Program-made: the position numbers and the translations under genes
Shown: piece by piece, positions 11,982-64,000 of the stretch
How the letters are laid out: each line of letters starts with the position of its first letter
Position numbering within the stretch: the stretch's first letter is position 1
Assembly: GCF_902713615.1 (NCBI RefSeq)
Contig: NC_052176.1
Span: forward strand, 11,546,243-11,610,242
Source: Scyliorhinus canicula
Taxonomy: Eukaryota
Direction: 5' to 3'
DNA: 64,000 bases
Notes under the pieces: generated by a model
The model's database searches: none
Told to the model about the DNA's origin: nothing
The model's input: only the letters and a program-made list of their open reading frames with translations

Positions 11982-12399
11982 GCGACAAGAAAAGGCAGAT
12001 GGAGAAAATAGTTGAAACTGACCGGCATGAACAGATACAGAATATATTCCACACACACATCCAAAACCACAGACTTTCAAATCTAGAATTAAGCCCATTA
12101 AACACAGTTCCAGTGAATGGTAGTAAAATAATTAAACTGTAATGTATGAGAGACACAGATTGTCTCTGTGTCCACACTCTCAAACTGCCAGGGATTGAAG
12201 ATCACTGAATGTATCCCACAGTCACACACAATACCTCTGGCTGACAGAGAATAGAAACACACTCACAGAGCAGTGCAGAGACTGGGAGGTACAGATTGAT
12301 AACAACACTCACACACACCAAACAGAGATTGACAAACCACAATTGATCTCTCACACATTCAGTTCAGAGACTGACTGATGCAGAGTGAATCCTAAACTC

Positions 12400-16686: not shown

Positions 16687-16797
16687 ATTGGTGCTTCAAA
16701 CAGATATCTGATTGGTCACTTTGTAGCCGGCTCCACAATGTTGTTGAGATAACCAATCAGCAATGTGTGCACCGCCATTCCTCCTGAAGCTATAAGA
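16687..16797 (+). promoter_or_regulatory. H2A promoter: ATTGG 16687 and 16711, CCAAT 16753, TATAAG 16791
   Basis: Motifs lie directly upstream of the ATG at 16856. Confidence 0.8.
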
Positions 16798-16804
16798 GAA
16801 GTGA

Positions 16805-17242
<438 letters not shown>

Positions 17243-17272
17243 AGCGACCATTCTTTAATCTAATAACCCAAA

Positions 17273-17288
17273 GGCTCTTTTCAGAGCC
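17273..17288 (+). terminator. Histone 3' stem-loop (H2A) with purine-rich HDE near 17301
   Basis: GGCTCTTTTCAGAGCC. Confidence 0.95.
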
Positions 17289-17762
17289 GCTCACTTTATC
17301 TGAAAAAGGCCGAACCATTATCTGACCGTCAGAGATTCTGCTCTGTTGCTTAATGTGCAAATGTTTCACGCTTTAATTACACAATCCGCAGCGCATTCTG
17401 TGCGCGACATTATTTATGACACATGTGAATTGACGGTGTTTGTTGGGAATAAAAGTCTCTGAACTGAAATTGGGTTACTGTGTGACGCACTTCATACTCG
17501 GAGCCTCGAATTAACATCAAACCCTGGCTCACGATGTGCAGGAAGGTTTTTATGGAAGCAGTTTATTGGGGCAAGAAATCTTGGGAAACTGAAATTATTG
17601 TAGCTCCAATAAAAATGCTTTGATATTACATACTGAGCGGCAAAATTGACAACAGCATATTATATAAACGATGAATTTCCCTGGAGACGAGAAACTTCAT
17701 TATAATGTGAATGTAAATGTAACCGTAATGTAACCGGAAGCTCTTTTCCTGAAAGACTTGGT

Positions 17763-17778
17763 GGCTCTTAAAAGAGCC
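17763..17778 (-). terminator. Histone 3' stem-loop (H3 copy 1)
   Basis: Reverse complement GGCTCTTTTAAGAGCC; HDE GAAAAGAGCTT near 17738-17748. Confidence 0.95.
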
Positions 17779-17810
17779 TTTGTTGTTGTTATTATTGGTG
17801 AAGCCGGGTT

Positions 17811-18278
<468 letters not shown>

Positions 18279-18847
18279 CTATTTAAGGCATTATAGTGAC
18301 CGCCCTCTTCTCCTCATTGGATGCAGCCCGATCCCGTGGACAAGTTTGAAAAGAGCGATGGGCGGCAAGGATATCAGGGCCCTGATTGGTGGACCTGCAA
18401 CTGACAAACCATCAATTTCAAACAACCCGCCAATTTCACAGGGACAGGGAACGGATATTTGAGACCATCGAAAAAAAATCAATCTCGAATTGTGAATATC
18501 AAAAACATCTCAATGATTCCTGCTCCCATTTTTGTCCCGGATTCGACTCACCCGAGGTTAGATGAATAAAACCGAGCAGGCACAGAATTCCCGCTCTCAT
18601 TACAATGTCCGTGTTCACTATGTGCGGTTACAGGGCTGACTGCGGAGAAAGGTTGTTTCAGACTGTACAGCAAATCTATGTGGCCTTCTAATGAGAAAAC
18701 AAATGAATGATAGGAAAGGATTTCCTGCTATAACGCCACCCGTCTTAACAGGAAATCGAGGTTTCCAGGGTCTGACTCGCTAAACCAGCTCCATGGGTTA
18801 TTCTGCTGCAATTCTAAGGTCAGTGCTCTCAATGTGAGGGTTTGGGC

Positions 18848-18863
18848 GGCTCTTAAAAGAGCC
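18848..18863 (-). terminator. Histone 3' stem-loop (H4 copy 1)
   Basis: Reverse complement GGCTCTTTTAAGAGCC. Confidence 0.95.
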
Positions 18864-18897
18864 TTTGGGTTTTGTTATAATAGTCAAATGGAGTTTC

Positions 18898-19218
<321 letters not shown>

Positions 19219-19900
19219 TCAGTCAAATCGCTGCTGAATGAGAGACGAGCTGCTGCACTTTCCTTTATTATACAGCCCGCCCCGACCTGACTGAGAAAGA
19301 GAGAGAGGCGGGGAGCAGACTGAGTGACAGACAGAGCAGTGAAATGTCTTTGACCATCCAGCTCCGCCTCCTGCCTGCTCCAACCCACATTTTATATTCC
19401 AAACAGAAGTGAAAAGAGCGCGCTGAACACGGACAAACTGCAACATCATATAGCAGCTAGTTAGAAACGCGGATCTATTAAATCCAGGCATGTCAGTAAT
19501 AATCCGGCCTCAGTCCACTCCTTTCTAGAACCAGCCCAACTATCTGCTCCCATTTCAACCCCAGCTCCGATTCCATCCCCACACAACTCGGGTCGGGAAT
19601 TTTACTAACATCCCTTCCAGCTGATATAAAGTGTTTGAGTTGAGGTGGGATTTCTCCGCCATGTTAACTATTTTACACACTCTTCCCATGAATGTGTCAC
19701 TGTTCCCCGGACACATCCCGGTTAGGAAGAAGCAGCAACTTCCCTGTGTTTTAGTGCAGAGTGGGGGGAGAAGCCCGGTGCAGAGCATGTCAGCGAGTGA
19801 GCGGCAATACTGGATTGACATTTCTATCTGAAATCTGCTCCCAGCACCGGGACAGGGATTCATTGGTCGGGGGATCAGCTCTTTCCGGAGAGATGTGGGT

Positions 19901-19916
19901 GGCTCTGAGAAGAGCC
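19901..19916 (-). terminator. Histone 3' stem-loop (H1 copy 1)
   Basis: Reverse complement GGCTCTTCTCAGAGCC-ACCCA; HDE GGAAAGAGCTG near 19876-19886. Confidence 0.95.
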
Positions 19917-19952
19917 TTTGGGTTCAGAGGTTTACAATTTGCTCGCGTTCTT

Positions 19953-20639
19953 TCACTTCTTTGCTGGTTTCTTAGCCTTTACTGATTTCACTTTGGGATT
20001 GACCCTCGATTGGGTCTGCTTTATTCCGCCCGTGGTCTTTTTCACAGAACTTTTCTTCGGGGCTGCTTTCTTCGCGCTCTTTTTGGGAGCTGCCGCCTTC
20101 TTGGCTGCTGCTTTCTTGGGAGATTTCTTGGCTGCGGGTTTCTTGGGAGATTTCTTGGTTGCGGGTTTCTTGGGAGATTTCTTGGCTGCGGGTTTCTTGA
20201 GAGTTTTCTTGGCTGCGGGTTTCTTGGGTGCTGCTTTCTTGGGAGATTTCTTGGCTGCTGCTTTCTTCACTAAAGGTTTCTTGCCTGCTCCGGTCTTTAT
20301 CACTTTTCCCCCGGTTGTCTTCTTAACGATCTTGAAGGAGCCGGAGGCGCCCGTGCCCTTGACCTGAGCCAAGCTGCCGTTGTCCACACTCCTCTTGACA
20401 CTTTGCTTAATCTGGGACCCCCGTTTATCCACATCGACCCCTTTGCTCCACAGCTGCTTCTTTATGGCCTGGAAGGAAACCCCCTTGCGATCGCCGCTAT
20501 CCGCCACAATCTTGTGGATCAGCTCGGCCAGCCCGGGACCTTCTCGTTTCTTCCGGGGAACCACCTTCTTCTGCTTCTTGACAGCCTTGACTGGGGCGGC
20601 GGCTGGAGGAGCCGTTTCGGCGGCTGCACTTTCGCTCAT
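19953..20639 (-). CDS. H1: Linker histone H1, divergent globular domain, 228 aa
   Basis: MSESAAAETAPPAAAP N-terminus, KGTGASGSFK motif, K/A/P-rich tail with SPKK repeats; ATG at 20639. Confidence 0.95.
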   Translation of the reverse strand: MSESAAAETAPPAAAPVKAVKKQKKVVPRKKREGPGLAELIHKIVADSGDRKGVSFQAIKKQLWSKGVDVDKRGSQIKQSVKRSVDNGSLAQVKGTGASGSFKIVKKTTGGKVIKTGAGKKPLVKKAAAKKSPKKAAPKKPAAKKTLKKPAAKKSPKKPATKKSPKKPAAKKSPKKAAAKKAAAPKKSAKKAAPKKSSVKKTTGGIKQTQSRVNPKVKSVKAKKPAKK

Positions 20640-20714
20640 GTCCGGGACTCGGCACAAATTCTCTCCGTCAATGTGAAGTGGCTGAGAAATGAAGCCTCTG
20701 GTGGCGGCACTGAG

Positions 20715-20795
20715 CAACTTAAAGGCAGCGAGCGGACGGGGCGGAGACAACCTGCTCTCAGCTCCAGGCTGCTGCTGCTGCGTCTGTGTTTTTCT
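20715..20795 (-). promoter_or_regulatory. H1 promoter: H1 box AAACACA (20785-20791), GC box, TTTAAG TATA-like element
   Basis: Motifs read directly; duplicated at 63006-63086. Confidence 0.75.
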
Positions 20796-21949
20796 CTGGT
20801 CATAAACTCTCCAATTCCACTCAAATTCCAGCTCCACAGTGTCCCAGGATAAATCCTTCCTGTCTCTCACACTCTAATGTTTGCTGTAGGAAAGGTTTCC
20901 CGCGATTTGAAGGCTCCATTTCGGATTTAAACCCGTTTTACTGATGCACTGTTCGCCCTCTCTCACCCGATCGCTCTCATTTTCCCAACCTTTCCGCAGA
21001 AATCTGGAAAGCAGCATCTAAACCGCCCTGAAATCCAACTTGGGAAAGTAGGAGGGGATCAGGGGGATTGATTGAATGAACAATATTTCCATTTTGTCCC
21101 AGAGGGATTGGGAGATCTGCTGATCAGAGCGGACACACAAACACAGTTGGTTTCTCCTGTTTGGCCCGCCCCTTTCACTCTCTCTTCCACAATATTCACA
21201 TCCACACACAAGGTTTGGAAATTACATTTCCCAGGGCAGAATTCTCCCTCTTCTCAACATTTGTTTCCAAATCGGTGCCTTAATTGTAGATTTTCATCTC
21301 ACTTACTGATCAACTGAGTTTTCTGCTCCCTATCTTCTGTTTCCCTAAATACCCGGCAGCAGCAAGTCATATTTTTAAATCTAAACTCATTGATGACACG
21401 CTTTACTTGAATGTGGAAATACAATTGATCTCCTCTCCAACAGTGGAGATTTTCCTGATTGATGTCATCCTCCTGCACTGCCGGTAACACTGAACCCCAA
21501 ACTCAACAAGCAGGGACAGACAGTTAAAGAATAGTCCCACCCCCTCTGAGAGTGGAGATTTTCACAGTGACACACAGATTCTGACCATTCTGATCCGAAC
21601 AGCAAATTTAAAAAATAAAGATGGACTCAAAGAGGGAACGTGTAAACCAGGAGAACGTGTAAACTAGTGGGGAGTGTAAACCAGGGACAATAATAAATGA
21701 GGGGAGTGTGTTAACCAGAGAAATGTGTAAAATCAGTGGAAGATGCATAATCGAAGACATTCTCCCCGTGTGTGGGTTCCCCCGGGTGCTCAGACTTCCT
21801 CCCACAGGCCAAGCATAGAACAGAGAACAGTACACCACAGAACAAGCCCTTCGGCCCTCGATGTTGTGCCGAACAATGATCACCCTACTCAACCCCACGT
21901 ATAAACCCGTAACCCAACTCCTTCTGCCCTGCAGTAATTCTCGAGTTCT

Positions 21950-22980
21950 ATGGAAAATGAAGTCAGTCGGTGAATTGTTAGTTTGCAGAAAGTATGAGTT
22001 TGAGGGGCTGAATGGCAGTGTAATAACAAACAAGCTGCAGGCAATGGCTGCAAATTGAATATCTCATTGGGACAAACACACAGCTACAAAGGTGATTGGT
22101 TGAGCCCTGGGGCGCAGAGCCACTTGCACCCACACACACACAGTCCCCCCAACACGGGCTCTATCGGAGGTTTTGCTCCAAATGTGATGACAGTGAAATG
22201 GGGAATATTCCCATTGATTCTCAATGCGGAATTGCTGCGCAGATCTGCGCATGCCCGGGGTAGCCCCGCCCCCTGCCTGTCGTCACTGAGATTACGCGCG
22301 CATGCGCAGCCCCGCCCTCACACACACTCCATTTGCTCAGTGAGTGGAGACGCTTTGTTCAAACTGAGTGAAATGTCAGGGCCCAGGTCAGCGAGGAAAC
22401 AGCGTTCTCATTGCAGCAGCTCATCCATTTGGGAGTGTGAGCAAAGAGGCTCAGAGATCATTACTGACTCGGGGGGAGTTCAGGGAGAATCGGGGGCTGT
22501 TTGCAAGAGGCGCAGCGGGAGCCCCATCTTGTTCCGGGACTTGGAGTGAGCGGGGGGAAGGGAGAGCTCTTTCTGGGCCTGGCTTATTGTCTGATTCTGG
22601 GGCAGGATTTGGACAGTATTTTCTATTTTTACTAATTATCAGTTGAAAGAATTGTTTAATTTATCATTGGCCTCATCTGACCCTGATTTACAAGAATTTT
22701 TTTTTTCTTCCCAACGTTCATCAGATGAAGAGATGAGTTCCAAGATGATGATACCTCAGCAACATGAATGTGCAGCCGTCTCCTTCTAACTGACAGTAAG
22801 TACAATATTAATCCAACATTGCAGAGACACAGACACAACATCAGCTCCACCGTCACAGAGAACAGAAGCAGCCACACTTACATTGAGCTCAAGTCCCAGA
22901 TAAACATGTCCTATCCAACAGTGACACACAAGAGGGCAGGTGGGATAACTTTCCACAATTCACCCCTAGTCCATGAACTT
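21950..22980 (+). promoter_or_regulatory. Promoter-like module copy 2 (uninterrupted) with putative non-coding exons
   Basis: ATTGG x2, gggaatattccc palindrome, GCGCATGCGC (NRF1), GC boxes, donor CAG|GTCAG at 22387, poly-Y/AG then exon 22725-22795 then GTAAGT. Confidence 0.55.
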
Positions 22981-29150: not shown

Positions 29151-29512
29151 AGGGCAGCACGGTAGCATTGTGGAGAGCACAATTGCTTCACAGCTCCAGG
29201 GTCCCAGGTTCGATTCCGCCTTGGGTCACTGTCTGTGCGGAGTCTGCACATCCACCCCATGTGTGCGTGAGTTTCCTCCGGGTGCCGATCCGGTTTTCTC
29301 CCACAGTCCAAAGATGTGCAGGTTAGGTGGATTGGCCATGATAAATTGCCCTTGGTGTCCAAAATTGCCGTCAGTGTTGGGTGGGGTTACTGGGTTATGG
29401 GGATAGGGTGGAGGTGTTGACCTCGGGTAGGGTGCTCTTTCCAAGATCTGGTGCAGACTCAATGGGCCGAGTGGCCTCCTTCTGCACTGTAAATTCTATG
29501 ATAATCTATGAT
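29151..29512 (+). mobile_element. HE1-like SINE in the CR1 3' UTR
   Basis: gggcagcacggtagcattgtgg head, ggttcgattcc B box, gattaat flanks. Confidence 0.85.
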
Positions 29513-33234: not shown

Positions 33235-33542
33235 TCTCAATCAAATTCACTTTGAAATTGGAAATGGGTGATAATGAAGTGAATCAGTGAAATGGTAGTT
33301 TGCAGAAAGTGTGAGTTTGAGGGGCTGAGTGACAGTGTAATAACAAACAAGCTGCAGGCAATGACTGCAAATTGAATATTTCATTGGGACAAACACACAG
33401 CTACAAAGGTGATTGAATGATCCCTTGGGCGCAGGGCCACTTGCACCCACACACACACAGTCCCCCCAACACGAGCTCTGTAGGAGATTTCGCTCTATAT
33501 GTGATGACAGTGAAATGGGGAATATTCCCATTGATTCTCAAA
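33235..33542 (+). promoter_or_regulatory. Promoter-like module copy 3, truncated before the NRF1 core
   Basis: Matches 8575-8774 plus 9723-9835. Confidence 0.5.
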
Positions 33543-35968
33543 GTACCAGGGACTGATACATACAGGATAGATCTGGCACAGAGGTTTTGGCAAAGAATGA
33601 AAACTGCTGATGAAATGTCAAATTCACACTCACTACCAGTGGCAACCTCACAATGAGCTGTTGTTTGTGTATCGGACCACACCCCAACATTCGTTAGGAT
33701 ACCGGACAAGAAACTGCAAACATCTTTTTCAATTTGTAAATTGAAAATTGTACATTAACTCAATGTACAGCTCATATATACAGAATAAACTCGATGTACA
33801 GCTCAAATGTACAGAATAAACTCGATGTACAGCTCAAATATACAGAATAAACATGAAGGTGACATCACATACCTGAAAAGAGGAGGTGCAGATCATAATC
33901 CACATTCGCTTACCAAAAACACACTTGTAATAAATTTAAAACGTGACAATTACTTTTCAGAAACCAAAAGACGCAGACAATATATTCATATACTTGTGAC
34001 AGAAAAGTGCACAAATATTCAATTTTGTCACATCAGAATGGATAGGAGTAGAGAAAACTATGTCTTAATGAATCAGAAATTTAAAAAGATGGAATAGTTT
34101 ACTTTAATGTTTTCAGGAACTCAAATGAGTAGATAAAACAAAATAAGATACTGAGCTATGAGAGATTGAGGTGAACATATTAACACATAGAGCCACACTG
34201 AAAACTGTGATAGATGCACGATATAACACAATGTTCCAATTCACTGCAATATACAGAGTGAAAACAACACTCACATGGCAGCAGTGGACATTCTCAGTGA
34301 ATAGCGGGACAGATATACCACATACTGGCAGCTTTATGAGTATAAACATGCTTCCATTCATCTATTTAAAGAAATAGAGATTAATATCTACCCTTTTCTG
34401 AAACATAAGGTTGCAGCACAAACCCAGAATCTATGTATCAGAAACTCTGGGAAACAGAGTACAATAGACAGTGACATATACAGACTCGGCTGACTCATGG
34501 GACGTTAGACCTAATACAATTGTAGTTAGAAGAACGACAATCAACTTTCTTAAAAGATATAGGTATCAGAGAGGATGTTGCTGTGAAAATCCTACTTTCC
34601 TACACAGTACCATCTGTGACAGATCAAGAAGGGAAACAGTAATGACATACTGTACCGGAGACTGATACATACAGGATAAATCCGGCACAGAGATATTTGA
34701 CAAAGAATGAAGACTGCTGATGAAATGTCAAACTCACACTCACTTTCCGTGGCATCCTCACAATGAGCTGTTGTTAGTGTATCGGACAACACCCCAACTT
34801 TTGTTAGGACACCGGACAACAAACTGCAAACATTTTTTTCAATTTGTAAAACTGTGAGGAAAGGAAATTTGTCCCCAGGAGTGATGACACTGACCAATAT
34901 ATTAAAACAAACTTTAATTTAAACACAGAATTAATCACGTTAACATTAAAGCACCAGCTTTACAATTAACAGTCAATCCTATACTCTCACAGATTATCAG
35001 GTAAAGAATCAATTACATATTCACAAAGAAAAAAAACATATGATAGAGAGAGAGAAATACAGCACAGAACAGCCCCTTTGGCCCAAGATGTTGTGCCGAA
35101 CTTTTGTCCTAGTTTTATCATGGAAGTTTGGACACCAAGGGCAATTTATCATGGCCAATCCACCCAACCTGCGCATCTTTGGACTGATATTGACAGTTAT
35201 GTGAGAAATTTCACTCCAGTGCACCTGAGGAAACAAGAATTTGCAGTATGAGTCACATGGTTGCATTGCTTTCAGAGACAGTCTTACAAAGAATCATATC
35301 CATATCGAGATTCCAGAAAATGACAGATCCAGACAGGAATGTAGGGGGTTATGGATTAGTGCAAAACGCACATTCTGAATCAGAAAATGCGTGAATCGAA
35401 AACAAAAACCAGAACAATTCATTTGCAGCGAATAATAGATGCAGAATGACTTGGATACTGACATTGTGGCCCAGTGGTGAACCGATACTGGATAAACATA
35501 TTTCATATACAGACCACTATTGGTTTTAGTATATATGTTTGAATGTGGGCATTATCAAAAAGTACCTTCCTAATAGCTGTGTTTAAGGTGGCTGTGGACT
35601 GCCTTCTTTCACCCTCGTAGCCTGTCTGCCGAAGCTACATCGATAGAACAAGGGCACAACAAAGAACACACCAACAATAAACATGCAAACACACAAAAAC
35701 CCCACAGTTGCATCCCAATAACTGATAGGGTAAATAAAACAAACATTCAAAAACAGATGCAGATACTGAGTTATCACAACATCCACATTCCGTGACTGAA
35801 ATATTCAGAGTAAATTCCACATCCAATTAGCAGAGTAAAGAACAGGCATCAAGTAAACCTCCATTGTGTTGCAGTAACTGACACATGCAGCACAGAACCA
35901 ACATTCTGACATTGGGAACAGACAAGTGAAGATTAAAACGCATTGTTACATAAAGGAAACTGACAGAG

Positions 35969-37197: not shown

Positions 37198-37697
37198 NNN
37201 NNNNNNNNNNNNNNNNNNNNNNNNNNNNNNNNNNNNNNNNNNNNNNNNNNNNNNNNNNNNNNNNNNNNNNNNNNNNNNNNNNNNNNNNNNNNNNNNNNNN
37301 NNNNNNNNNNNNNNNNNNNNNNNNNNNNNNNNNNNNNNNNNNNNNNNNNNNNNNNNNNNNNNNNNNNNNNNNNNNNNNNNNNNNNNNNNNNNNNNNNNNN
37401 NNNNNNNNNNNNNNNNNNNNNNNNNNNNNNNNNNNNNNNNNNNNNNNNNNNNNNNNNNNNNNNNNNNNNNNNNNNNNNNNNNNNNNNNNNNNNNNNNNNN
37501 NNNNNNNNNNNNNNNNNNNNNNNNNNNNNNNNNNNNNNNNNNNNNNNNNNNNNNNNNNNNNNNNNNNNNNNNNNNNNNNNNNNNNNNNNNNNNNNNNNNN
37601 NNNNNNNNNNNNNNNNNNNNNNNNNNNNNNNNNNNNNNNNNNNNNNNNNNNNNNNNNNNNNNNNNNNNNNNNNNNNNNNNNNNNNNNNNNNNNNNNN
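37198..37697. other. Assembly gap (500 N)
   Basis: Run of N of round-number length. Confidence 1.
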
Positions 37698-40600
37698 AGG
37701 CACTGAAAGAGCATCATCAAGAAATTCAAACTGACATACAGGCCGCGATGAAAGAGGCATTTGCTGAAACTCTGCTGCAAATACAGATAGCTCTGAGCAG
37801 GGCCGAAAAGAAACTGGAGGCTCAGGAAGCCACCATCAAAGGCCTTGAGAGAGCCGCAACCGACCAAACCCACCGATGGTGGCTCTGGAAAAGGAGGTGG
37901 AGAGACTGGTCGCAGCGCAGGGTAACCTGAGTGGGAAGGTCAAGGACCAGGAAACTCAGTCCAGGAGGCAGAACCTGTGAATCGTGGGCCAACCAGAAGG
38001 AACCGAAGGCAGAGAGCCCACGGACTACATGGCCCAAATGCTGGGCAACCTGGTGGGAAGGGTGATCTTCCCAAACCCACCAGAAATAGACAGGGATCAC
38101 CAGTCGCTGCGACCGAATCCCAAGGCTGGGGAATAACCAAATGCCATCAAAGCCAAAGTACAGCAATACCAGCACTGGGAAAGAATCCTGCTCTGGGCCA
38201 GGCAGTCCAGGAACTGCAATTGGGAAGGACACAGACTCCGAATTTATCAGGACATTGGGGCTGACCCGGCCACGTGCAGAGCTGGATTTAACAGGGCCAA
38301 AGCAGCGCTGTACGAAAGCGGCGTTCACTTAAGAATGTTATATCCAGCCAGGCCTGGGTTACATACCAGGGCAAAGACCATTTTTTATGGCCCTGCCTGA
38401 AGCAGATCAGTTTGTTGCAGACTGCGGGCTGGGGCAGCGACAACAGGAGAGGCGGGGGAAGTGTCCCGGCAAAGAGCGGCAACGCAAACCAACAAGGGGG
38501 GGGGGGGGGGGGAGAGAACCTCACCCCTCCGCCACCCCCCCTCACAACACAACCGACTTGACGAACTATGAGCCACCATCCGAGTGACCGCTGGAGATGG
38601 AAGATGGTGGCCCCAAACGTACAGACAAGGGAAAAAAGCGGAGGACCAAGTGTCGGGCATGATGTGGAAAGAACAAACAGAAACCACAGAGATTGGGTGG
38701 GAGGACAGTGGGAAGTTTCAAATGAAGTTACTGCGAAAAGCCCCTAGTCGCCACATTCCGGCGCCTATTCGGGGAGGCTGCTACAGGATGGCTACATAGG
38801 GCCACAGGCAGGGGCCCAAAACAAAGGAGCACTGCAGACAACCACCCAGTACGGTCTCTGGGCGAAGGGAGACCCTGGAGTACAGGGGCCTGCCTATATG
38901 GAGACACACTGTTGGCAGCCGTGCTTGGTGCCCCCTGGACAAAGGGAAACCCCGGAGTGCAGGGACACGTCCACCAGGTAAGTATGGTTAATCCCACAGG
39001 AGCAGGGGGACAAATCTCCCCCACCAGGATAGTCACCCGGAATGTCAGGGACATAACGGCCCAGTCAAAAGAGCCAGAGTCTTCATCCACCGAAGAAGCA
39101 TGAGGGCCGACATAGTTATCCTCCAAGACAGACACCCGAGAGACCAGCACAGGCAGCAGGTAAGGAAGGGCTGGGTGGGACAGACTTACCGTTCCTGCTA
39201 TGGGATGAGTGCCAGGGGGTAGTGATTCTGTTAAAGAACAGGACGATGTTTAAGGCGACAAAGACGGTAATGGACCCAAGGGGATGGTCCGTCATGGCTG
39301 GATGGCGCAGCGGTAGTAATGTCAACGTGTACGCTCCCAACTGGGACAACGCAAAATGGATTGAAAAGCCCATGGTGGGAATCCCCTACATAGCGACGCA
39401 CCGACTGATCATGGTGGGGGGTGGGGGGACTTTTACTGTGTACAGGACCCAAGGACAGAGAGGTCAAACCCCAGAATGGGGAACATCTTGGAAGATGGAA
39501 AAGGAACCCGGTCACTTCATGGGGCAGATGGGGACAGTGGACCCATGGAGGATCACCCGCACAGGGCAGAAGGAGTTCTCCTTCTTCTCCCCTGTCCAAT
39601 ACAAATACTCCAGGATTCACTTCTTTGTGGTCGAAAAATGGGTGCTCCCAGGGCTGGTCAAGGCGCAGTACTCCACAATTGGAATCTCCGACCACGTTCC
39701 ACATTATATGGATGTGAGGTTAGAGACAGGCAGCACCCAACGCCCCACATGGAGGTTGGACACTGCCCTACAAGGACTTGAGCGAGAGGGTATCGCAGGC
39801 CATAGCGGGGTATACGACAAACAAGATGGTGGAGGTTTCATCCTCCACGTTCTGGGAGGCGCTAAAGGCCGTGATTAGAGGGGAAATTGGGCAGAATGGT
39901 GGCGCAGTGGGTTAGCACTGCAGCCTCACTTACGCCGAGGTCCCAGGTTTGATCTCGGATCTGGGTCACTGTCAGTGTGGAGTTTGCACATTCTCCCCGT
40001 GTTTGTGTGGGTTTCGCCCTCACAACCCAATGATGTGCAAGCCAGGTGGATTGGCCACGCTAAATTGCCCCTTAATTTGAAAAAGAAAATAAAAAATGTG
40101 TTGGGTACTCTAAATTCAAAATAGAGGGGAAATGATTGCCTTTAAAGTGGGAAGGGATAGAGAGGAGAGAGAGGCTCGGCAGCAGCTGGCCCCAACAGCA
40201 GAGCTCTTAGCGGAAAGGAAAAAGCTACAAATGGACTTTGACCTGCTCTCCACGAGGAAAGCAGTGAACCAACTCCGCCAGGCACGGGGAACCCTACACA
40301 AACACGGGGACAAAGCGCGCAAATTAGGCACAACAGAGGCACATTAGAAACAGACCCAGACAAGGTTAGCAAGGCCTTCGAGGACTTTGACTGGGGACTG
40401 TACACCTCAGATCCCCCAACAGGGGGCTCGGCGATGAAACCGTTCCTTGATAGACTAGACATGCCAGTCATGGGGAGGACAGTAAATGGGGCCTGGGAGC
40501 ACCGCTAGAACTGGGAGAGGACATGGAGAGTATAAGCTCCATGCAGGCGGGGAAGGCAGCCGGACCAGACGGGTTCCTGGCGGACTTCTACAAAACATTT

Positions 40601-43600
40601 GCAACAGCACTGGCCCCTCACCTGCGGGAGATGTTCACAGACTCGCTGGCAAGGGGCAGACTGCCACCTATGCTGGCACAAGCCTCAATCTCGGTAATAG
40701 CTAAGAAAGACCCGACTGAATACGATTCATACAGACCCATCTCACTACTGAACGAAGATACAAAAATATTGGCCAAGATCCTGGCCAAAAGATGAGAAGA
40801 CTGCGTACCAGAGGTGGTCGTAGAGGATCAAACGGGCTTTGTCAAAGGTAGACAGCTAACATTGAACATCAGGCGCCTGCTGAACGTGATCATGACCCCA
40901 TCCGGGGACAGAGCACCTAAGATAATAGTTTCCCTGGACGCAGAAAAGGCCTTCGACAGAGTCAAGTGGAAGTTCCTTATAGAGGTACAGAAGCGGTTCG
41001 GGTTCGGACCAGGGTTCACCTCCTGGGTGAAGCTCCTGTACAACACTCCCATGGCGAGCGTATGGAGAAACAACACCAGCTCCCAGTACTTCCAGCTCCA
41101 CAAGGGCACCAGGCATGGATGCCCGCTGTCACTGCTGCTGTTCACTCCAGCGATCGAACCATTACAGGTCACACTCAAAACAGCAAAGAACTGGAGGGGG
41201 CTCCAAAGAGGAGGCTGAGAGTATGGAGTCTCGCTCTATGCAGATGACCTGCTCCTCTACATCTCGGACCCACAAAGCAGCATGGAAGGAATCATCGCAT
41301 CCTGAAAGAGATCGGTGCCGTCCCGGCCGACAAACTCAACATGAGCAAAAGTGAGATTTTCCCGGTGAACCGGCAAGGGGGAGGGGCAGCACTGGTGGGA
41401 CTGCCGCTAAAACAAGCCCAACACAAATTCCACTACCTGGGGATCCTAATCGCACATCACTGGGCGGGGATCCACAAATGGAACCTGACCAGTCTGGCAG
41501 AGGAAGTCAAAAAGGACCTCCAGAGATGGAACACATTCCCACTCACCATGATGGGGAGAATACCGACGATCAAAATGAACCGTACTGCCCAGGTACCTCT
41601 TCCGATTTAGATCCATCCCGATCTATATCCCCAAGGCCTTTATTAACTCACTGGACAAGTTAAACATGGTGTTTGTATGGGGGGAAAGAATGCTAGGATC
41701 ACAAAGAAGGTCGTACAGAATCCAAAATCCAGGGGAGTGCTAGCCCTCCCAAACCTTCAATTCTAACCCTGGGCAGCGATAGCGGAAAGAGAAATGGGAT
41801 GGACAAAGGGGACAGAAGCTGAGTGGATGTGCGCAGAGGAGGCCCCCTCAAGGGGACCTCCCTCCGGGCCCTCGCCACGGCGGCTTTCCCATCCCCGCCC
41901 AAGAAACACTCCAGCAGCCCAGTGGCCACCCTCCAGGCGTGGAACCAACTGCGGCAGCAATTCGGGCTGACCAAAATATCTGACAAAGCCCCATGTGAAA
42001 TAACCACAGGTTCACACCAGCACTCACCGACGCCACCTTCAAAAGGTGGAGACAGGATGGGGAGGACATTGACAGTCCGGGACCTATACACTGACGGTAG
42101 GTGGAGACAGGATGGGGAGGACATTGACAGTCAGGGACCTATACACTGACGGTAGGTGGAGACAGGATGGGGAGGACATTGACAGTCAGGGACCTATACA
42201 CTGACGGTAGGTGGAGACAGGATGGGGAGGACATTGACAGTCAGGGACCTATACACTGACGGTAGGTGGAGACAGGATGGGGAGGACACTGACAGTCAGG
42301 GACCTATACACTGACGGTAGGTGGAGACAGGATGGGGAGGACACTGACAGTCAGGGACCTATACACTGACGGTAGGTGGAGACAGGATGGGGAGGACACT
42401 GACAGTCAGGGACCTATACACTGACGGTAGGTGGAGACAGGATGGGGAGGACACTGACAGTCAGGGACCTATACACTGACGGTAGGTGGAGACAGGATGG
42501 GGAGGACACTGACAGTCAGGGACCTATACACTGACGGTAGGTGGAGACAGGATGGGGAGGACACTGACAGTCAGGGACCTATACACTGACGGTAGGGGGA
42601 GACAGGATGGGGAGGACACTGACAGTCAGGGACCTATACACTGACGGTAGGTGGAGACAGGATGGGGAGGACACTGACAGTCAGGGACCTATACACTGAC
42701 GGTAGGTGGAGACAGGATGGGGAGGACACTGACAGTCAGGGACCTATACACTGACGGTAGGTGGAGACAGGATGGGGAGGACACTGACAGTCAGGGACCT
42801 ATACACTGACGGTAGGTGGAGACAGGATGGGGAGGACACTGACAGTCAGGGACCTATACACTGACGGTAGGGTCACATCACTGGAAGAACTGATGCAGAG
42901 ATTCCAACTAGCTAAAGGCAACAAACTCAGATACCTGCAGCTTAAAACCTTCCTCCGGAAGGAGACAAGGGCATACCCGCGACCACCATGACAGACACTA
43001 TTAGAAGAGCTACTGGACGCAGACATCCTAGGCAGAAGGAACTGTAGAGACATGTACGAACAACTGCTGGAGAAGACCGACACCGAACTGGACACGACAA
43101 GGAGGAAATGGGAGGCAGGCTTGGGTTAGAAATAGGGTGGGAATTCTGGAGCGGAGCACTGCACAGGGTCAACTCTCCCTCCACATGCCCGAGGCTCAAC
43201 CTAACGCAGCTAAAAGTGGTACATAGGGCCCAGTTGACCAGAACCCGAATGAGCAGATTCTTCCCAGAGGTGGAGGATAGATGTGAACGGTACCAAGGAG
43301 GCCCAGCCAACCATGCCCACATGATCTAGTCTTGCCCCAGACTTGGTGGGTACTGAACAGCCTTCTTCAAGGCAATGTCCAAGCTGGTGGGGAAGAGGGT
43401 AGGGCCATGCCCGAAAGTGGCGGCCTTCGGGGTATCATACCAGCCAGATCTCTTCCTGGGGAGGAGGGCGGATGCCCATGCCTCCCTGATCGCCCGCCGT
43501 AGAATCCTGCTCGGCTGGCGATCAGCAGCACCACCTAAAGCTGCAGACTGGCTTTCGGAATTTCTCCCAATGGGGAAAATCTAATTCACCATCTGTGGGT

Positions 43601-47369: not shown

Positions 47370-48340
47370 TTTTTACTAGCACCTAAAGATCACAACTTGT
47401 GAGATGAAAGAGCTTCTGGATATATTTTAATCCAACAAAGTTACAAAGAAGTGCAAATGGATACTTCAACATTGATTGCTCAATCTATAACCTAATTAAT
47501 ACTATACTGATTACTTTACAGATGAAAAGCTGTCATTACAACAAGTTGATCCAACGTTCCATGATATGGAGTAGGGGTGAATTGTGGAAAATTATCCCAC
47601 CTGCCCTCTCGTGTATCACTGTTGGATTGGGCATGTTTATCTGGGAGTTGAGCTCAATGTAAGTGTGACTGCTTCTGTTCCCTGTGACGGTGGAGCTGAT
47701 GCTGTGTCTGTGTCTCTGCAATGTTGGATTAATATTGTACTTACTGTCAGTTAGAAGGAGACGGCGGCACATTCATGTTGCTGAGGAATCATCATCTTGG
47801 AACTCATCTCTTCATCTGTTGAACTAGGGGGAAGAAAACAAATCTCTTGTAAATCAGGGTCAGATGAGGCCAATGATAGATCAATCAATTCTTTCAACTG
47901 ATAATCAGTAAAATAAAGAAAATACTGTCCAAATCCTGCCCCAGAATCAGACAATAAGCCAGGCCCAGAAAGAGCTCTCCCTTCCCCCCGCTCACTCCAA
48001 GTCCCGGAACAAGATGGGGCTCCCGCTGCGCCTCTTGCAAACAGCCCCCGATTCTCCCTGAACTCCCCCCGAGTCAGTAATGATCTCTGAGCCTCTTTGC
48101 TCACACTCCCAAATGGATGTGCTGCTGCAATGAGAACGCTGTTTCCTCGCTGGAGGGGCTGCGCATGCGCTGTCAGCTTCAGAGTGACGACAGGCAGAGG
48201 GCGGGGCTAAACCGGACATGCGCAGATCCCCGCAGCAATTCAACATTGAGAATCAATGGGAATATTCCCCATTTCACTGTCATCACAGATAGAGCAAAAC
48301 CTCCTATAGAGCCCGTGTTGGGGGGACGCTGTGTGTGTGG
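47370..48340 (-). promoter_or_regulatory. Promoter-like module copy 4, downstream part; the upstream part is at 55372-55600
   Basis: Reverse complement of 22130-23520 without the SINE; split by the Tx1 insertion. Confidence 0.55.
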
Positions 48341-50011
48341 TTTTATAGGGTTTAACAACTGTAACAATATTGTTGTGTTGTTTTTTTTTAGTTTTGTGAG
48401 TGATGACCTGCTGGGCTTATCGACACGCAGCAGGATTAAAACCCTGCATCCACCGACTATCCTGGCCTGTTGCACGGCGTGACAACAATGTAAAAGAACA
48501 AAAATTAACTGAGGGACAAAAGCAAACCGGACCCTGCGAAAATCAGGGTTAATAAGGCAGCCCAACCCTACGGTGCCCAAGGAGCATGCAAGGCCTCAAG
48601 TGTACCCGTGGTCAACGCATGCTACAGCTCCAGGGACACACGGCCACGAACAGGGCCGTGGAAGAGGGGCAGACAGTCAGGCCGGATGACCCCCTCGGTC
48701 GCCCACTAACTGGACCTATTAATGGCAAGTTTGGCCAGGCCCAGGAGCAGGTTCACAAGGAGGCCCTCCACCTTCCACCCTCCCCCCTGCTCCGGATGTC
48801 CGTAGGTCAGGAACGTGGGGCTAAAGTGCAAAGACAAAAACAACAATGTCGTCAAAAAACTAAAAAGGGAATGCAGCCGAGGACAGACAACATACACATG
48901 CTCCACGGTCTCCACCAGGCCGCAAAAGTGGCAGGTCTCTGGGGAGGCCGTGTGGTGACTTAACCTACGGTTGCACGACACTGCCTTGTGCAGCTCCCTC
49001 CACTCCAGGTCCCCAAATCTGACAGGGAGGATGCCTCCGTCGAGGGACCTCCAGTGGAACGTCCGCCGCCGGATGGTGAGCGAGGGCAAGGAGGTGGACA
49101 GTGTGCAGCAGCAGGCCGTACAGTAAAACCCTCCGCGTGGTGGGAAAAGACACGGGAGGTGTTTCCGTGAGGCGGTTGGGGTTGTGGGGCACCGGCGCCC
49201 GGAGGGGGTTCCGGGGCCTGGGAACAACGTGGAATACCATCCGAGCAGGGGTCCGCTCAGACGGGATGCTACGGCACAACTGCGCCGTCTCGAGTCCAAG
49301 TGTGCCCACGGGGCCGAGCACGACCGTTTAGAGGCCTCGGATGATTTTGGCCGTGTGCTGGATGGTCCGCGCCCGGCGAGCTTGTAGGGCATCACCCAGT
49401 CCACTCCTCTGCCACCCTGCATATCCCTGATCCTGGTCACCCCGGCATCCACAGCCCCCCACTCCGCCAGCCACCGGAATGGATATTGGCGGAGATGCGG
49501 ATTCCTGAGCAGCGGCTCCCTTACGATAGTAACTGCTCCTGACGGGGGAGAGCTGCGGCACGTGGCGACCATGTTCCAGACTTTGAGAAGGTCCTGGTAC
49601 AAGACGGGCAGCACCAACAAAGAATTCTGAAGACCTTGCTGGTCAGCGAACAGGGGTAGCAGATTCGAGGTCAGGTCATGTACCTGGCGGAAGAAATACG
49701 TCACCACAGGCACACCATCGTAGAGGAGGCTCAACGTACAGGTATCACTGCAGAGTCTGAAGGGGGAAAGTCGCGATGTGGGCACACCAGAGCCTGACCG
49801 CCCTCCGCTATTGGGAGACTCAAGACCTCTGCAGCGACCCAGTGCAATCCATTGTCCCAGAAGAACCGAATCAGAGTTCTCTGGATGTGTGTGACAAAGA
49901 CAGGGGGAAGGGTCAAAGTGACCAGCCGGTACCACAGCATGGAGGCTATCAGCTGGTTTATGATGAGAAATCGACCCCTGTAGGGCAGCACTCGGAGCAG
50001 TCCTGTCCAGC

Positions 50012-54974: not shown

Positions 54975-55325
54975 GGGCGGGAGGACAGAGGCAGGTGTCT
55001 CCACCCCCGGGAGGGGAACAGCACCAGGCCCAGGCAGTCCCGGTCCACCTCGGGCACCGGGATGGAGGACAGATGGCAGGGTCTTCACCCCGGGAGGGGG
55101 GCAGCACCAGGCCCAGGCGGTCCGGTCCCCCTCATTCAGAGGGGCGGGAGGACAGAGGTGCAGGTCGGATGGGAGGGCAGAGGGCAGGGTCTTCACCCCG
55201 GGATGGGGAACAGCACCAGGCCCCAGGCGGTCCTGGTCCCACCTCGGGCACCGGGATGGGAGGACAGGGGGTCGGTCTTCACCCCGGGAGGGGGAACAGC
55301 ACCAGGCCCCAGGCGGTCCCACTCT
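54975..55325. repeat. ~80-bp imperfect repeat x4 in the Tx1 5' UTR
   Basis: Recurrent cttcaccccggga.ggggaacagcaccaggcc(c)caggc.gtcc. Confidence 0.8.
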
Positions 55326-55794
55326 CACCTCCAGCAGCAAAGCAGCAGCTCCACTCCCGCAAGTCTGAGACACTGTGTGTGTGTGGGTGCAAGTGGCCCT
55401 GCGCCCCAGGGCTCAACCAATCACCTTTGTAGCTGTGTGTTTGTCCCAATGAGATATTCAATTTGCAGCCATTGCCTGCAGCTTGTTTGTTATTACACTG
55501 CCATTCAGCCCCTCAAACTCACTTTCTGCAAACTACCATTCCACTGACTGACTTCATTTTAACACCTTTCATAGTTGAAATTGAATTTGGTTTGTACACT
55601 ATTCTGGTTCACAGAGTCCGCTGGTTGATACATTTCAGAGGCATTAGACAATTGTCTTGTCTTGGACAATCACCTGGTTTGAATCACTCCCCTGATTTCC
55701 ACACTCCCTGATTTACCCACACCACTGATTTACTCACTCCCCTGGTTTCCAATTTGTAATTGAATCTGATTTGAACACTCCGCTGGTTTACACA

Positions 55795-58151: not shown

Positions 58152-58529
58152 ATGGTTGATGACAAAAAAGCTCCAGCTCCCAAGAAGGGCGCTAAGAAAA
58201 CCCAGAAGAAGATCCCAGTAAAGGGCGGCAAGAAGCGGCGAAGGTCGAGGAAGGAGAGTTACTCCATCTACATCTACAAAGTGATGAAGCAGGTTCACCC
58301 CGACACCGGCATCTCCTCCAAGGCCATGAGCATCATGAACTCGTTCGTCAGCGATATTTTCGAGCGTATCGCGGGTGAGGCTTCCCGCCTGGCCCATTAC
58401 AACAAGCGCAGCACCATCAGCTCCCGGGAGATCCAGACCGCCGTGCGCCTGCTGCTGCCCGGGGAACTGGCCAAGCACGCCGTGTCGGAAGGGACAAAGG
58501 CGGTCACCAAGTACACCAGCTCCAAGTAA
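58152..58529 (+). CDS. H2B: Histone H2B, 125 aa, divergent N-terminal tail
   Basis: [27 protein letters not shown]...AVTKYTSSK; ATG at 58152. Confidence 0.98.
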
Positions 58530-58559
58530 AACTGTTCTCAAACTCGTTCAACACCCAAC

Positions 58560-58575
58560 GGCTCTTTTAAGAGCC
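58560..58575 (+). terminator. Histone 3' stem-loop (H2B)
   Basis: GGCTCTTTTAAGAGCC-ACCCA. Confidence 0.95.
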
Positions 58576-59489
58576 ACCCACAATTTCTGGAAAGCAGCCA
58601 AACCATCATACTTTAAACTATTATTAGTTTATTTCTATTAGGAATAGCCAAATCCGTTCAAATAGGGTTTGACAAGAACATAACATTCTGGGTGATGTCC
58701 AGTTATCGCCCGGGCGACCTTCGTGTCTAAGTCCCATCATTTAGTGACCGCTCGGTGACACTGTGTCTTTGGTTTCTGACTTGTTCACATTCGGTATCTG
58801 TCGCGATTTTTGGAGAGAGAATAGATCTCCAAAACCTCCCTTTCAATTTGTGTTCGGGATTCGAAAAAATCTCCCTTCCGATTTATGTCGAGAGCACATT
58901 AGTGCTGTGGGAGAACTACATTTCAATACTGACACTAGCTCCAAACTGCTGACTCCACTTTTAGCACTAAAGTAGTCTACAATATGGATCTTTTTCATAA
59001 TATTTGCAGCTGGCTATAAATTAAACATTCTGTCTGCGGCTGATAGCGTTTTAAACAGCAGCTAGATTAAACTCGATTCGAATCCAAGTTGTAAAAATCT
59101 GTGGGAACAGTTTCGGATCTAAATGCCCCTTCTGCAAATCCGAAACTTTTCCACGGGTACTCACAGACATGCTGAGTTTCTCCAGCATTTTCTCTTTAAT
59201 TCACATTTGCAGCATCCGCATTATTTGCTTTAATTTGTTTTGGGTTCGTCAGTTACAAAGAAATCCCAAATCCGAAACTGACAGATAAAGGGAAACTGTA
59301 GACTCGTCAAAGAGAGAGAATCCAACAATCTCATACTCAAATTTCAATGAGTTAGACACAGTTTTAAGGTCCCTGTTAAATTTTCTCTGTTTTATATTTT
59401 CGCGCTCTTTTATGCTTTGAAATAAATATTCAGTTGGAATCTGAACATTTTGCGCCCAAACTTTCCGCCCTCAGCACCGTGGATCCTCT

Positions 59490-59556
59490 TGATTGGTGCT
59501 TCAAACAGATATCTGATTGGTCACTTTCAGAGCCACTCACTTTATCTGAAAAAGGG
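59490..59556 (+). pseudogene. Scar of a deleted H2A gene (distal promoter fused to half stem-loop and HDE)
   Basis: ...ctgattggtcacttt|cagagccactcactttatctgaaaaagg; the left part matches 16709-16722 and the right part matches 17282-17309. Confidence 0.93.
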
Positions 59557-60038
59557 TGAGCTGTTCTCAATCCGCTTAGTGCCGTGTTTGTGAGAATTTC
59601 CCTGAGGCTTCAGGCTGGAATGAGTATCCCGTGTTGTTGGTATTTACCGGAGGGCGGCTGTTATTAGCGTGCTGGCTTTCTAGCGTGCTGGCTTTCTGAA
59701 ACTGACCGTTTATGTGCAATGGGTCAGCGGGGTTTCAGAATTCATTCCCGCTCTCATTACAAAATCAGTGCGACTAACCAGAGGTCGCCACTCTTTTATT
59801 TGTCAGTTTAGCGGCCTTTAACCAGCAGTGGGACCGGGACGACTCTAATAGTCTAAAATCTCTGTCAGAGCCACCACTCCGTAAAAAAATGACCTGTTGT
59901 CCATTCACTTAACTCAGGTATGTGAGAATGTCACTGCAGCTTAGGAATGCAATGAGACACTGCCGATGCTTATATTCGAAATTACCGCATCTCAACTGAG
60001 GGATTGGGTGTTGAAGCTCTTTTTCTGACAGATGTAGT

Positions 60039-60054
60039 GGCTCTTAAAAGAGCC
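60039..60054 (-). terminator. Histone 3' stem-loop (H3 copy 2)
   Basis: Reverse complement GGCTCTTTTAAGAGCC. Confidence 0.95.
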
Positions 60055-60083
60055 TTTGTTGTTATTATTGGTGAAGCCGGGTT

Positions 60084-60551
<468 letters not shown>

Positions 60552-61120
60552 CTATTTAAGGCATTATAGTGACCGCCCTCTTCTCCTCATTGGATGCAGC
60601 CCGATCCCGTGGACAAGTTTGAAAAGAGCGATGGGCGGCAAGGATATCAGGGCCCTGATTGGTGGACCTGCAACTGACAAACCATCAATTTCAAAAAGCC
60701 CGCCAATTTCACAGGGACAGGGAACGGATATTTGAGAAAACTAAAAAAAAATCAATCTCGAGTTGTGAATATCAAAAACATCTCAATGATTCCTGCTCCC
60801 ATTTTTGTCCCGGATTCGACTCACCCGAGGTTAGATGAATAAAACCGAGCAGGCACAGAATTCCCGCTGTCATTACAATGTCCGTGTTCACTATGTGCGG
60901 TTACAGGGCTGACTGCGGAGAAAGGTTGTTTCAGACTGTACAGCAAATCTATGTCGCCTTCTAATGAGAAAACAAATGAATGATAGGAAAGGATTTCCTG
61001 CTATAACGCCACCCGTCTTAACAGGAAATCGAGGTTTCCAGGGTCTGACTCGCTAAACCAGCTCCATGGGTTATTCTGCTGCAATTCTGAGGTCAGTGCT
61101 CTCAATGTGAGGGTTTGGGC

Positions 61121-61136
61121 GGCTCTGAAAAGAGCC
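61121..61136 (-). terminator. Histone 3' stem-loop (H4 copy 2)
   Basis: Reverse complement GGCTCTTTTCAGAGCC. Confidence 0.95.
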
Positions 61137-61170
61137 TTTGGGTTTTGTTAAAATAGTCAAATGGAGTTTC

Positions 61171-61491
<321 letters not shown>

Positions 61492-62200
61492 TCAGTCAAA
61501 TCGCTGCTGAATGAGAGACGAGCTGCTGCACTTTCCTTTATTATACAGCCCGCCCCGACCTGACTGAGAAAGAGAGAGAGGCGGGGAGCAGACTGAGTGA
61601 CAGACAGAGCAGTGAAATGTCTTTGACCATCCAGCTCCGCCTCCTGCCTGCTCCAACCCACATTTTATATTCCAAACAGAAGTGAAAAGAACGCGCTGAA
61701 CACGTACAAACTGCAACATCACATAGCAGCTAGTTAGAAACGCGGATCTATTAGATCCAGGCATGTCAGTAATATTCCCGCCTCAGTCCACTCCTTTCTA
61801 GAACCAGCCGACCTATCTGCTCCCATTTCAACCCCAGCTCCGATTCCATCCCCACACAACTCCTCTCCCAGACGTGTTGGGAATCTTACTAACATCCCTT
61901 CCAGCTGATATAAAGTGTTTGAGTTGTGAGGCGGGATTTCTCCGCCGTGTTAAGTATTTTACAGACTCTTCCCATGAATCTGTGAATAATGAAACTAATA
62001 CAAACTGTGACTGTTCCCCGGTTAGGAAGAGGCAGCAACTTCCCTGTGTTTTAGTGCAGAGTGGGGGGAGAAGCCCGGTGCAGAGCATGTCAGCGAGTGA
62101 GCGGCAATACTGGATTGACATTTCTATCTGAAATCTGCTCCCAGCACCGGGACAGGGATTCATTGGTCGGGGGATCAGCTCTTTCCGGAGAGATGTGGGT

Positions 62201-62216
62201 GGCTCTGAGAAGAGCC
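62201..62216 (-). terminator. Histone 3' stem-loop (H1 copy 2)
   Basis: Reverse complement GGCTCTTCTCAGAGCC. Confidence 0.95.
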
Positions 62217-62252
62217 TTTGGGTTCAGAGGTTTACAATTTGCTCGCGTTCTT

Positions 62253-62930
62253 TCACTTCTTTGCTGGTTTCTTAGCCTTTGCTGATTTCACTTTGGGCTT
62301 GACCCTCGATTGGATCTGCTTTTTTCCGCCCTTGATCTTTTTCACAGGAGAACTTTTCTTCGGGGCTGCTTTCTTCGCGCTCTTTTTGGGAGCTGCCGCC
62401 TTCTTGGCTGCGGGTTTCTTGGGAGATTTCTTGGCTGCGGGTTTCTTGGCTGCTGCTTTCCTGGGAGATTTCTTGGTTGCGGGTTTCTTGAGAGTTTTCT
62501 TGGCTGCGGGTTTCTTGGGTGCTGCTTTCTTGGGAGATTTCTTGGCTGCTGCTTTCTTCACTAAAGGTTTCTTGCCTGCTCCGGTCTTTATCACTTTCCC
62601 CCCGGCTGTCTTCTTAACGATCTTGAAGGAGCCGGAGGCGCCCGTGCCCTTGACCTGAGCCAAGCTGCCGTTGTCCACACTCCTCTTGACACTTTGCTTA
62701 ATCTGGGACCCCCGTTTATCCACATCGACCCCTTTGCTCCACAGCTGCTTCTTTATGGCCTGTAAGGAAACCCCCTTGCGATCGCCGCTATCCGCCACAA
62801 TCTTGTGGATCAGCTCGGCCAGCCCGGGACCTTCTGGTTTCTTCCGGAGAACCGCCTTCTTCTGCTTCTTGACAGCCTTGACTGGGGCGGCGGCTGGAGG
62901 AGCCGTTTCGGCGGCTGCACTTTCGCTCAT
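62253..62930 (-). CDS. H1: Linker histone H1, copy 2, 225 aa
   Basis: Paralog of 19953-20639 with substitutions and tail indels. Confidence 0.95.
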   Translation of the reverse strand: MSESAAAETAPPAAAPVKAVKKQKKAVLRKKPEGPGLAELIHKIVADSGDRKGVSLQAIKKQLWSKGVDVDKRGSQIKQSVKRSVDNGSLAQVKGTGASGSFKIVKKTAGGKVIKTGAGKKPLVKKAAAKKSPKKAAPKKPAAKKTLKKPATKKSPRKAAAKKPAAKKSPKKPAAKKAAAPKKSAKKAAPKKSSPVKKIKGGKKQIQSRVKPKVKSAKAKKPAKK

Positions 62931-64000
62931 GTCCGGGACTCGGCACAAATTCTCTCCGTCAATGTGAAGTGGCTGAGAAATGAAGCCTCTGGTGGCGGCA
63001 CTGAGCAACTTAAAGGCAGCGAGCGGACGGGGCGGAGACAACCTGCTCTCAGCTCCAGGCTGCTGCTGCTGCATCTGTGTTTTTCTCTGGTCCCAAACTC
63101 TCCAATTCCACTCAAATTCCAGCTCCACAGTGTCCCAGGATAAATCCTTCCTGTCTCTCACACTCTAATGTTTGCTGCAGGAAAGGTTTCACGCGATTTG
63201 AATGCTCCATTTCGGATTTAAACCCGTTTTACTGATGCACTGTTCGCGCTCTCTCACCCGATCGCTCTCATTTTCCCAACCTTTCCGCAGAAATCTGGAA
63301 AGCAGCATCTAAACTGCCCTGAAATCCAACTTGGGAAAGTAGGAGGGGATCAGGGGGATTGATTGAATGAACAATATTTCCATTTTGTCCCAGAGGGATT
63401 GGGAGATCTGCTGATCAGAGCGGACACACAAACACAGTTGGTTTCTCCTGTTTGGCCCGCCCCTTTCACTCTCTCTTCCACAATATTCACATCCACACAC
63501 AAGGTTTGGAAATTACATTTCCCAGGGCAGAATTCTCCCTCTTCTCAACATTTGTTTCCAAATCGGTGCCTTAATTGTAGATTTTCACCTCACTTACTGA
63601 TCAACTGAGTTTTCTGCTCCCTATCTTCTGTTTCCCTAAATACCCGGCAGCAGCAAGTCATATTTTTAAATCTAAACTCATTGATGACACGTTTTACTTG
63701 AATGTGGAAATACAATTGATCTCCTCTCCAACAGTGGAGATTTTCCTGATTGATGTCATCCTCCTGCACTGCCGGTAACACTGAACCCCAAACTCAACAA
63801 GCAGGGACAGACAGTTAAAGAATAGTCCCACCCCCTCTGAGAGTGGAGATTTTCACAGTGACACACAGATTCTGACCATTCTGATCCGAACAGCAAATTT
63901 AAAAAATAAAGATGGACTCAAAGAGGGAACGTGTAAACCAGGAGAACGTGTAAACTAGTGGGGAGTGTAAACCAGGGACAATAATAAATGAGGGGAGTGT

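Follow-up and report, generated by a model that had tools for sequence, protein, structure and literature searches.

A probable 559-bp internal deletion that removed H2A from a histone repeat unit of the catshark Scyliorhinus canicula

Introduction

The histone pseudogenes and decayed cluster members described from mammals (PMC9526256) are close counterparts of the locus reported here. In both, a member of a multi-copy family has been inactivated while its neighbours remain intact, and the flanking regulatory sequence is still recognisable. The difference lies in the coding sequence. Catalogued histone pseudogenes usually keep a damaged coding sequence, whereas the catshark relic has none, and because the coding sequence is gone entirely, the relic is invisible to protein-similarity and stem-loop (RF00032) methods.

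Orphons and retroposed histone copies are also histone-derived fragments without a complete gene. The catshark relic differs from them in that it lies in its original place, with promoter-side and post-cleavage sequence that is foreign to an mRNA. A processed pseudogene or orphon was considered for the locus and rejected: the limits of an mRNA at a new site are not found, and the relic keeps upstream promoter DNA and the post-cleavage HDE.

Two further systems bear on the ends of the relic. Deletions made by end joining or MMEJ have, like this one, a clean junction that retains one TTT copy of two; the likeness to MMEJ is limited by the three bases of overlap, which are at the lower limit for microhomology (P = 0.06), and one junction assigns no pathway. 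The histone 3' processing signal (RF00032) is represented by the 3' stem arm, spacer, and HDE, all kept by the relic, with a purine-rich HDE that is the same as in the intact H2A, but the 5' arm of the relic is GGTCAC, with no Rfam match and no stable fold. No description of catshark histone clusters was found in the literature.

Results

Two incomplete histone repeat units

The window, by which we mean the whole 64,000-nt stretch of DNA that was analysed (assembly GCF_902713615.1, contig NC_052176.1, positions 11,546,243 to 11,610,242), contains two histone repeat units that lie 42 kb apart, with transposon-rich DNA between them. Searches with tblastn found one H2A and one H2B in the whole window, so that unit 1 is without H2B and unit 2 is without H2A. 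The features used below are as follows; histone genes were placed from the list of open reading frames (ORFs) and by tblastn.

16723-17281, plus strand: unit 1, reference copy of the 559 bp absent from unit 2 (blastn, sequence)
16856-17242, plus strand: unit 1, H2A coding sequence
17811-18221, minus strand: unit 1, H3
18898-19209, minus strand: unit 1, H4
from 19953, minus strand: unit 1, H1
58152-58529, plus strand: unit 2, H2B coding sequence (125 aa), the gene upstream of the relic; exact product recorded in GCA_902713615.2
58555-58599, plus strand: unit 2, H2B 3' stem-loop and HDE (Rfam RF00032, 39.5 bits)
58920-59527, plus strand: unit 2, retained H2B-H2A intergenic sequence, the distal H2A upstream region, matching 16105-16722 (blastn, 82.3%)
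59448-59520, plus strand: unit 2, surviving distal module, with E2F-like TTTTGCGC at 59448 and TTTCCGCC at 59462 and inverted CCAAT (ATTGG) at 59492 and 59516
59525-59527, plus strand: unit 2, TTT common to both breakpoints
59528-59555, plus strand: unit 2, H2A 3'-end relic, consisting of the last loop base C, the 3' stem arm AGAGCC, and an H2A-type spacer and HDE
59556-60012, no strand: unit 2, spacer from the relic to the H3 3' end, with no sequence relationship to its unit-1 counterpart, the H2A-H3 spacer at 17310-17736
60014-60059, minus strand: unit 2, H3 3' stem-loop and HDE (RF00032, 36.5 bits), at the start of the 97%-identical H3-H4-H1 block (blastn)
60084-60494, minus strand: unit 2, H3
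61171-61482, minus strand: unit 2, H4
62256-62930, minus strand: unit 2, H1

The exact 128-aa H2A product had no match among protein records, and a 145-aa extended H2A product is recorded only elsewhere, on a 24-Mb contig. At its left edge (16105), unit 1 adjoins sequence (15300-16104) that is repeated at, for example, 35185-35707, 12384-13023, and 29153-29243, so that transposon-like repeats, and no clean relic like that of H2A, border the missing H2B.

Repeats of two other kinds were seen in the window. An ORF-like stretch (…INGNIPHFTVIT…PVLGG.CVCGCKWPC) forms a cassette that occurs around the histone units in at least five copies, on both strands (9689-9976, 22055-22549, 33401-33709, 48117-48482, and 54995-55432). 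The cassette matched no Rfam family at gathering score, and neither hammerheads nor other Rfam families were found in the cassette and the spacers at E values up to 5. Positions 1-6300 and 37700-43300 make up a large, retroelement-like inverted duplication with near-identical ORFs on opposite strands, one copy of which adjoins a 500-base N gap (37198-37697).

The junction and the missing segment

Comparison of unit 2 with unit 1 by blastn matched 58920-59527 to 16105-16722 (82.3% identity over 626 columns), 59525-59555 to 17279-17309 (30/31 identical), and 60013-64000 to 17737-21709 (97.1% identity). The upstream match and the match of the 3' relic are colinear and in the same orientation in the two units, and they overlap by exactly 3 bases, the TTT at 59525-59527. 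The earlier note had described unit 2 as tracking the unit-1 H2A upstream region to 59527 and passing from there directly into the 3' arm of the H2A stem-loop and the HDE, a description that blastn reproduces to the base. The blastn coordinates likewise bear out that 559 bp (16723-17281) are missing, with TTT shared.

In unit 1, the missing segment holds the proximal CCAAT (16753), TATAA (16791), the H2A coding sequence, and the 3' UTR, together with the 5' stem arm GGCTCT (17273-17278) and three loop bases. The earlier note had the deletion ending within the hairpin loop, and the junction coordinates do place its end in that loop, which in the H2A stem-loop is four bases long. No H2A coding remnant was detected in unit 2 by tblastn with H2A, in agreement with the earlier statement that the event left no coding trace, and the protein look-up had no ORFs spanning the junction on record.

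The junction 30-mer occurs only once in the window, even when three mismatches are allowed, and the chance expectation in the window for the 31-mer at up to one mismatch is 2.6e-12. Chance origin of the relic match is excluded. As expected, the junction 30-mer had no match in metagenome contigs.

What remains of the promoter and the 3' end

Upstream of the junction, identity to unit 1 climbs to 94-96% in the last 100 columns, and the 38 bases adjoining the junction are identical. The E2F-like motifs and the inverted CCAAT boxes of the distal module lie within the retained sequence of unit 2, and we take them to be regulatory from general knowledge of histone promoters. Motif positions show no TATA or forward CCAAT remaining in the relic. 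The deletion had been said to fuse the promoter to half of the stem-loop; the distal module does survive, but the proximal CCAAT and TATA are lost, so that the first part of this wording is overstated. The second part holds: the 3' arm is present and the 5' arm GGCTCT is gone, its place being taken by GGTCAC, for which the sequence allows pairing at only three of six positions.

Two other features of the retained upstream region were considered. A divergent minus-strand exon was rejected by eye, as the GTGAGT donor-like site of unit 2 is not conserved in unit 1. An AATAAA present in both units (59421 in unit 2, 16616 in unit 1) lies within a 96%-conserved block; in unit 2 it follows H2B at a distance of about 900 nt, and it may be a polyadenylation site for read-through histone transcripts.

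Downstream of the junction, 27 of the 28 bases at 59528-59555 are identical to 17282-17309. The 21 bases that follow the relic stem arm match the H2A 3' flank only, and not the H2B, H3, H4, or H1 flanks, and they retain the purine-rich HDE (GAAAAAGG at 59548). With RF00032, a search of 58530-60090 at E values up to 5 returned nothing beyond the H2B and H3 stem-loops, leaving the relic unscored; the intact unit-1 H2A stem-loop (17268-17312) reaches 32.6 bits, slightly short of the gathering score (34). The predicted fold of the relic is not beyond shuffled controls (z = -0.54, compared with z = -3.33 for the intact H2A 3' end). Neither the covariance model nor the fold recovers in the relic the 6-bp stem and 4-base loop of a functional histone 3' stem-loop.

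The best predicted fold of the intact H2A 3' end (17273-17312) is itself not the canonical stem-loop. The 5' arm and loop (GGCTCTTTTCAG) are predicted to pair with the HDE (CTGAAAAAGGCC), at -14.4 kcal/mol and z = -3.3. This predicted fold is probably a by-product of the complementarity of the HDE to U7, the 5' end of which resembles the 5' half of the hairpin.

Lacking TATA, coding sequence, and an SLBP-binding hairpin, the relic looks dead. Residual use, either through transcription of the orphaned distal promoter together with the HDE or as an S-phase enhancer for the neighbouring H2B, is unlikely. It would explain the near-perfect conservation of the flanks (94-96% identity to unit 1 over the final 100 bases ahead of the junction, 96% over the 28 bases beyond it), but a recent deletion accounts equally well for this conservation. 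Junction words do occur in runs guessed to be RNA, including a run of only 5 million letters, but the types of these runs are guessed and they may be DNA. The relic also has no TATA, no ORF, and no known RNA family.

The downstream spacer and the age of the deletion

Homology to unit 1 extends no further than the end of the HDE (59555), and the next 457 bp of spacer are unrelated to the unit-1 spacer (Smith-Waterman score of 42 for 59556-60012, against a shuffled mean of 34.7 and sd of 5.8). Neither H2A-H3 spacer was found as a repeat in the window. This arrangement raises the alternative of a complex rearrangement by template switching or templated insertion, in which the 31-base piece of H2A would be an island and 59556-60012 foreign filler. 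Homology to unit 1 does end on both sides of the 31-base piece, and the spacer that follows has no similarity to that of unit 1. Such a pattern would also be seen, however, if the stem-loop and HDE were the sole conserved 3' elements between old paralogues. The distance from the would-be stop codon to H3 is 596 nt, near the 563 and 569 nt of intact units and as expected for a native spacer, and the supposed filler has no other copy in the window. We therefore regard a complex rearrangement as improbable.

The two units are mosaic in their similarity, with 97% identity across H3-H4-H1, 82% across the H2A upstream region, and H2A-H3 spacers that are unalignable. The outer edge of the H3 3' signal (60013 in unit 2, 17737 in unit 1) is precisely where the 97% block begins. 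This mosaic identity is suggestive of a recent duplication or conversion confined to half a unit.

A simple deletion would probably be fairly recent: between the relic flanks and the functional copy the difference is no more than about 5%, which fits an event that is recent in comparison with the divergence of the two H2A-side lineages. The same flank identity would also be expected under continued constraint or gene conversion. The parts that survive appear to be those under selection in the intact gene, which would be why they are still recognisable.

Breakpoints and repair

The junction is clean, with a TTT overlap and no inserted bases. For random breakpoint pairs drawn from the same flanks, the probability of an overlap of at least 3 bases is 0.060, and no extended homology was found around the two breakpoints (60 bases, local alignment score of 7.0 versus 6.9 for the null). 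The deletion had been called microhomology-mediated, a label that these results do not sustain: the shared sequence is a 3-base TTT with P = 0.060, and the surroundings of the breakpoints are no more alike than random. Microhomology-mediated repair is possible, and given the probability of the overlap and the lack of extended similarity, ordinary end joining fits equally well.

We consider it highly probable that the locus records a single, real internal deletion of 559 bp in a catshark histone unit, made by end joining or replication slip and leaving a dead relic. The original unit would have carried H2B and H2A, followed on the opposite strand by H3, H4, and H1. One break, ahead of the proximal promoter of H2A, and a second, within the loop of its 3' hairpin, would have been brought together, most likely by end joining, either classical or alternative, or by a slip in replication. 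The product would be a relic left without TATA, coding sequence, or an SLBP-binding hairpin, and thus dead.

The position of the second break allows a more specific reading, in which the loop breakpoint is no coincidence and the conserved 16-base palindrome of histone 3' ends is a preferred break site. The palindrome might be cut as a hairpin or at the TC of its loop, the agent being either a structure-specific nuclease or a nick begun by a deaminase. Human histone stem-loops are reported as mutation hotspots in a 2026 preprint (10.64898/2026.06.11.731563), which is a lead for a fragile hairpin and not a test of it. The 3' breakpoint does lie in the 4-base loop, and the loop makes up 0.8% of the 3' flank; this is a single event that was noticed after the fact. 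We consider a preferred break site at the hairpin quite doubtful. If it were real, half-hairpin relics would mark a route by which histone arrays lose genes repeatedly and which has gone uncounted until now.

Support for the junction outside the assembly

Histone arrays are repetitive and error-prone to assemble, so that an artefact must be considered, in which the animal has an intact H2A and the junction came from a mis-join or collapse. Sequencing runs were searched with a 60-base query (59498-59557), in which 27 of the 30 possible 31-mers cross the breakpoint; four words were sampled per run. All four sampled words were present in run X13 (study P4, 2018) and in run X25 (study P11, 2022), and three of four were present in run X2 (study P1, 2021). 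Four further runs held one of four words each and are ambiguous. As at most 3 of the 30 words are non-diagnostic, at least one diagnostic word is certain in any run with four of four, and the run with three of four would have only non-diagnostic words among its three with a chance of about 0.001.

X13, X25, and X2 are all small and belong to different studies; the assembly is unlikely to have been built from them. By this k-mer evidence (three to four sampled 31-mers per run), the junction exists in the species. The concern, raised with the original observation, that an assembly error might be involved is thus answered by the occurrence of junction 31-mers in at least three independent studies. 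The upstream flank is, moreover, 18% diverged from unit 1, which makes the region unique and easy to assemble. With junction-spanning 31-mers in small runs of 2018, 2021, and 2022, an assembly artefact is very improbable.

Direction of change and copy number

At two other places in GCA_902713615.2, the annotation has H2B followed by H2A, and at one of these places the distances are 1116 nt from H2B to H2A and 563 nt from H2A to H3. When the deleted segment is restored to unit 2, the corresponding distances are about 1132 nt and about 596 nt. Because H2B, H2A, and H3 occur elsewhere in this order and with matching spacing, the annotated gene order and spacing support the view that the loss of H2A in unit 2 is derived, by a deletion and not by an insertion in unit 1. 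The earlier reading of the event as a deletion agrees with this arrangement, the spacing of which is known from annotation only.

Two copies alone do not tell which came first, but an ancestral state without H2A, with H2A gained by insertion in unit 1, is extremely improbable, given that half of a palindromic hairpin with an H2A-type HDE makes sense only as the remainder of a complete histone 3' end, that the segment peculiar to unit 1, with one end in mid-promoter and the other inside the hairpin loop, is not shaped like an mRNA, a transposon, or an insertion, and that the H2B, H2A, and H3 order is annotated elsewhere in the assembly.

The exact unit-2 H2B is encoded at three places in the assembly, among which only the relic unit is without H2A, and the exact unit-2 H1 is found at one place. 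The H2A-less unit therefore appears to be single-copy in the assembly. As to whether it had been amplified, which the earlier note raised, the answer is negative so far as exact-protein look-ups of H2B and H1 show.

Other units of GCA_902713615.2 are annotated as H2B-H2A-H4 without H3 and as H2B-like-H2A-H1 without H3 or H4. Their spacing suggests that some of the missing genes may merely be unannotated. The annotated gene lists look incomplete, and a gene missing from such a list is not proof of its absence.

Discussion

The relic is of the non-processed kind and was left by the deletion of a replication-dependent histone gene. The loss of one H2A is ordinary for a redundant multi-copy family, and this case stands out only because it reads so cleanly and escapes annotation based on proteins or stem-loops. 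It provides a clear example of gene loss from a histone repeat unit.

Relics of this kind are missed by gene finders, pseudogene finders, and stem-loop models alike. Counts of histone units that are based on annotation can consequently mistake an H2A-less unit for a different ancestral arrangement. The two units in the window are complementary, one without H2B and the other without H2A, and each is a mosaic of ages, which indicates that the catshark array evolves piecewise and not as a set of uniform repeats.
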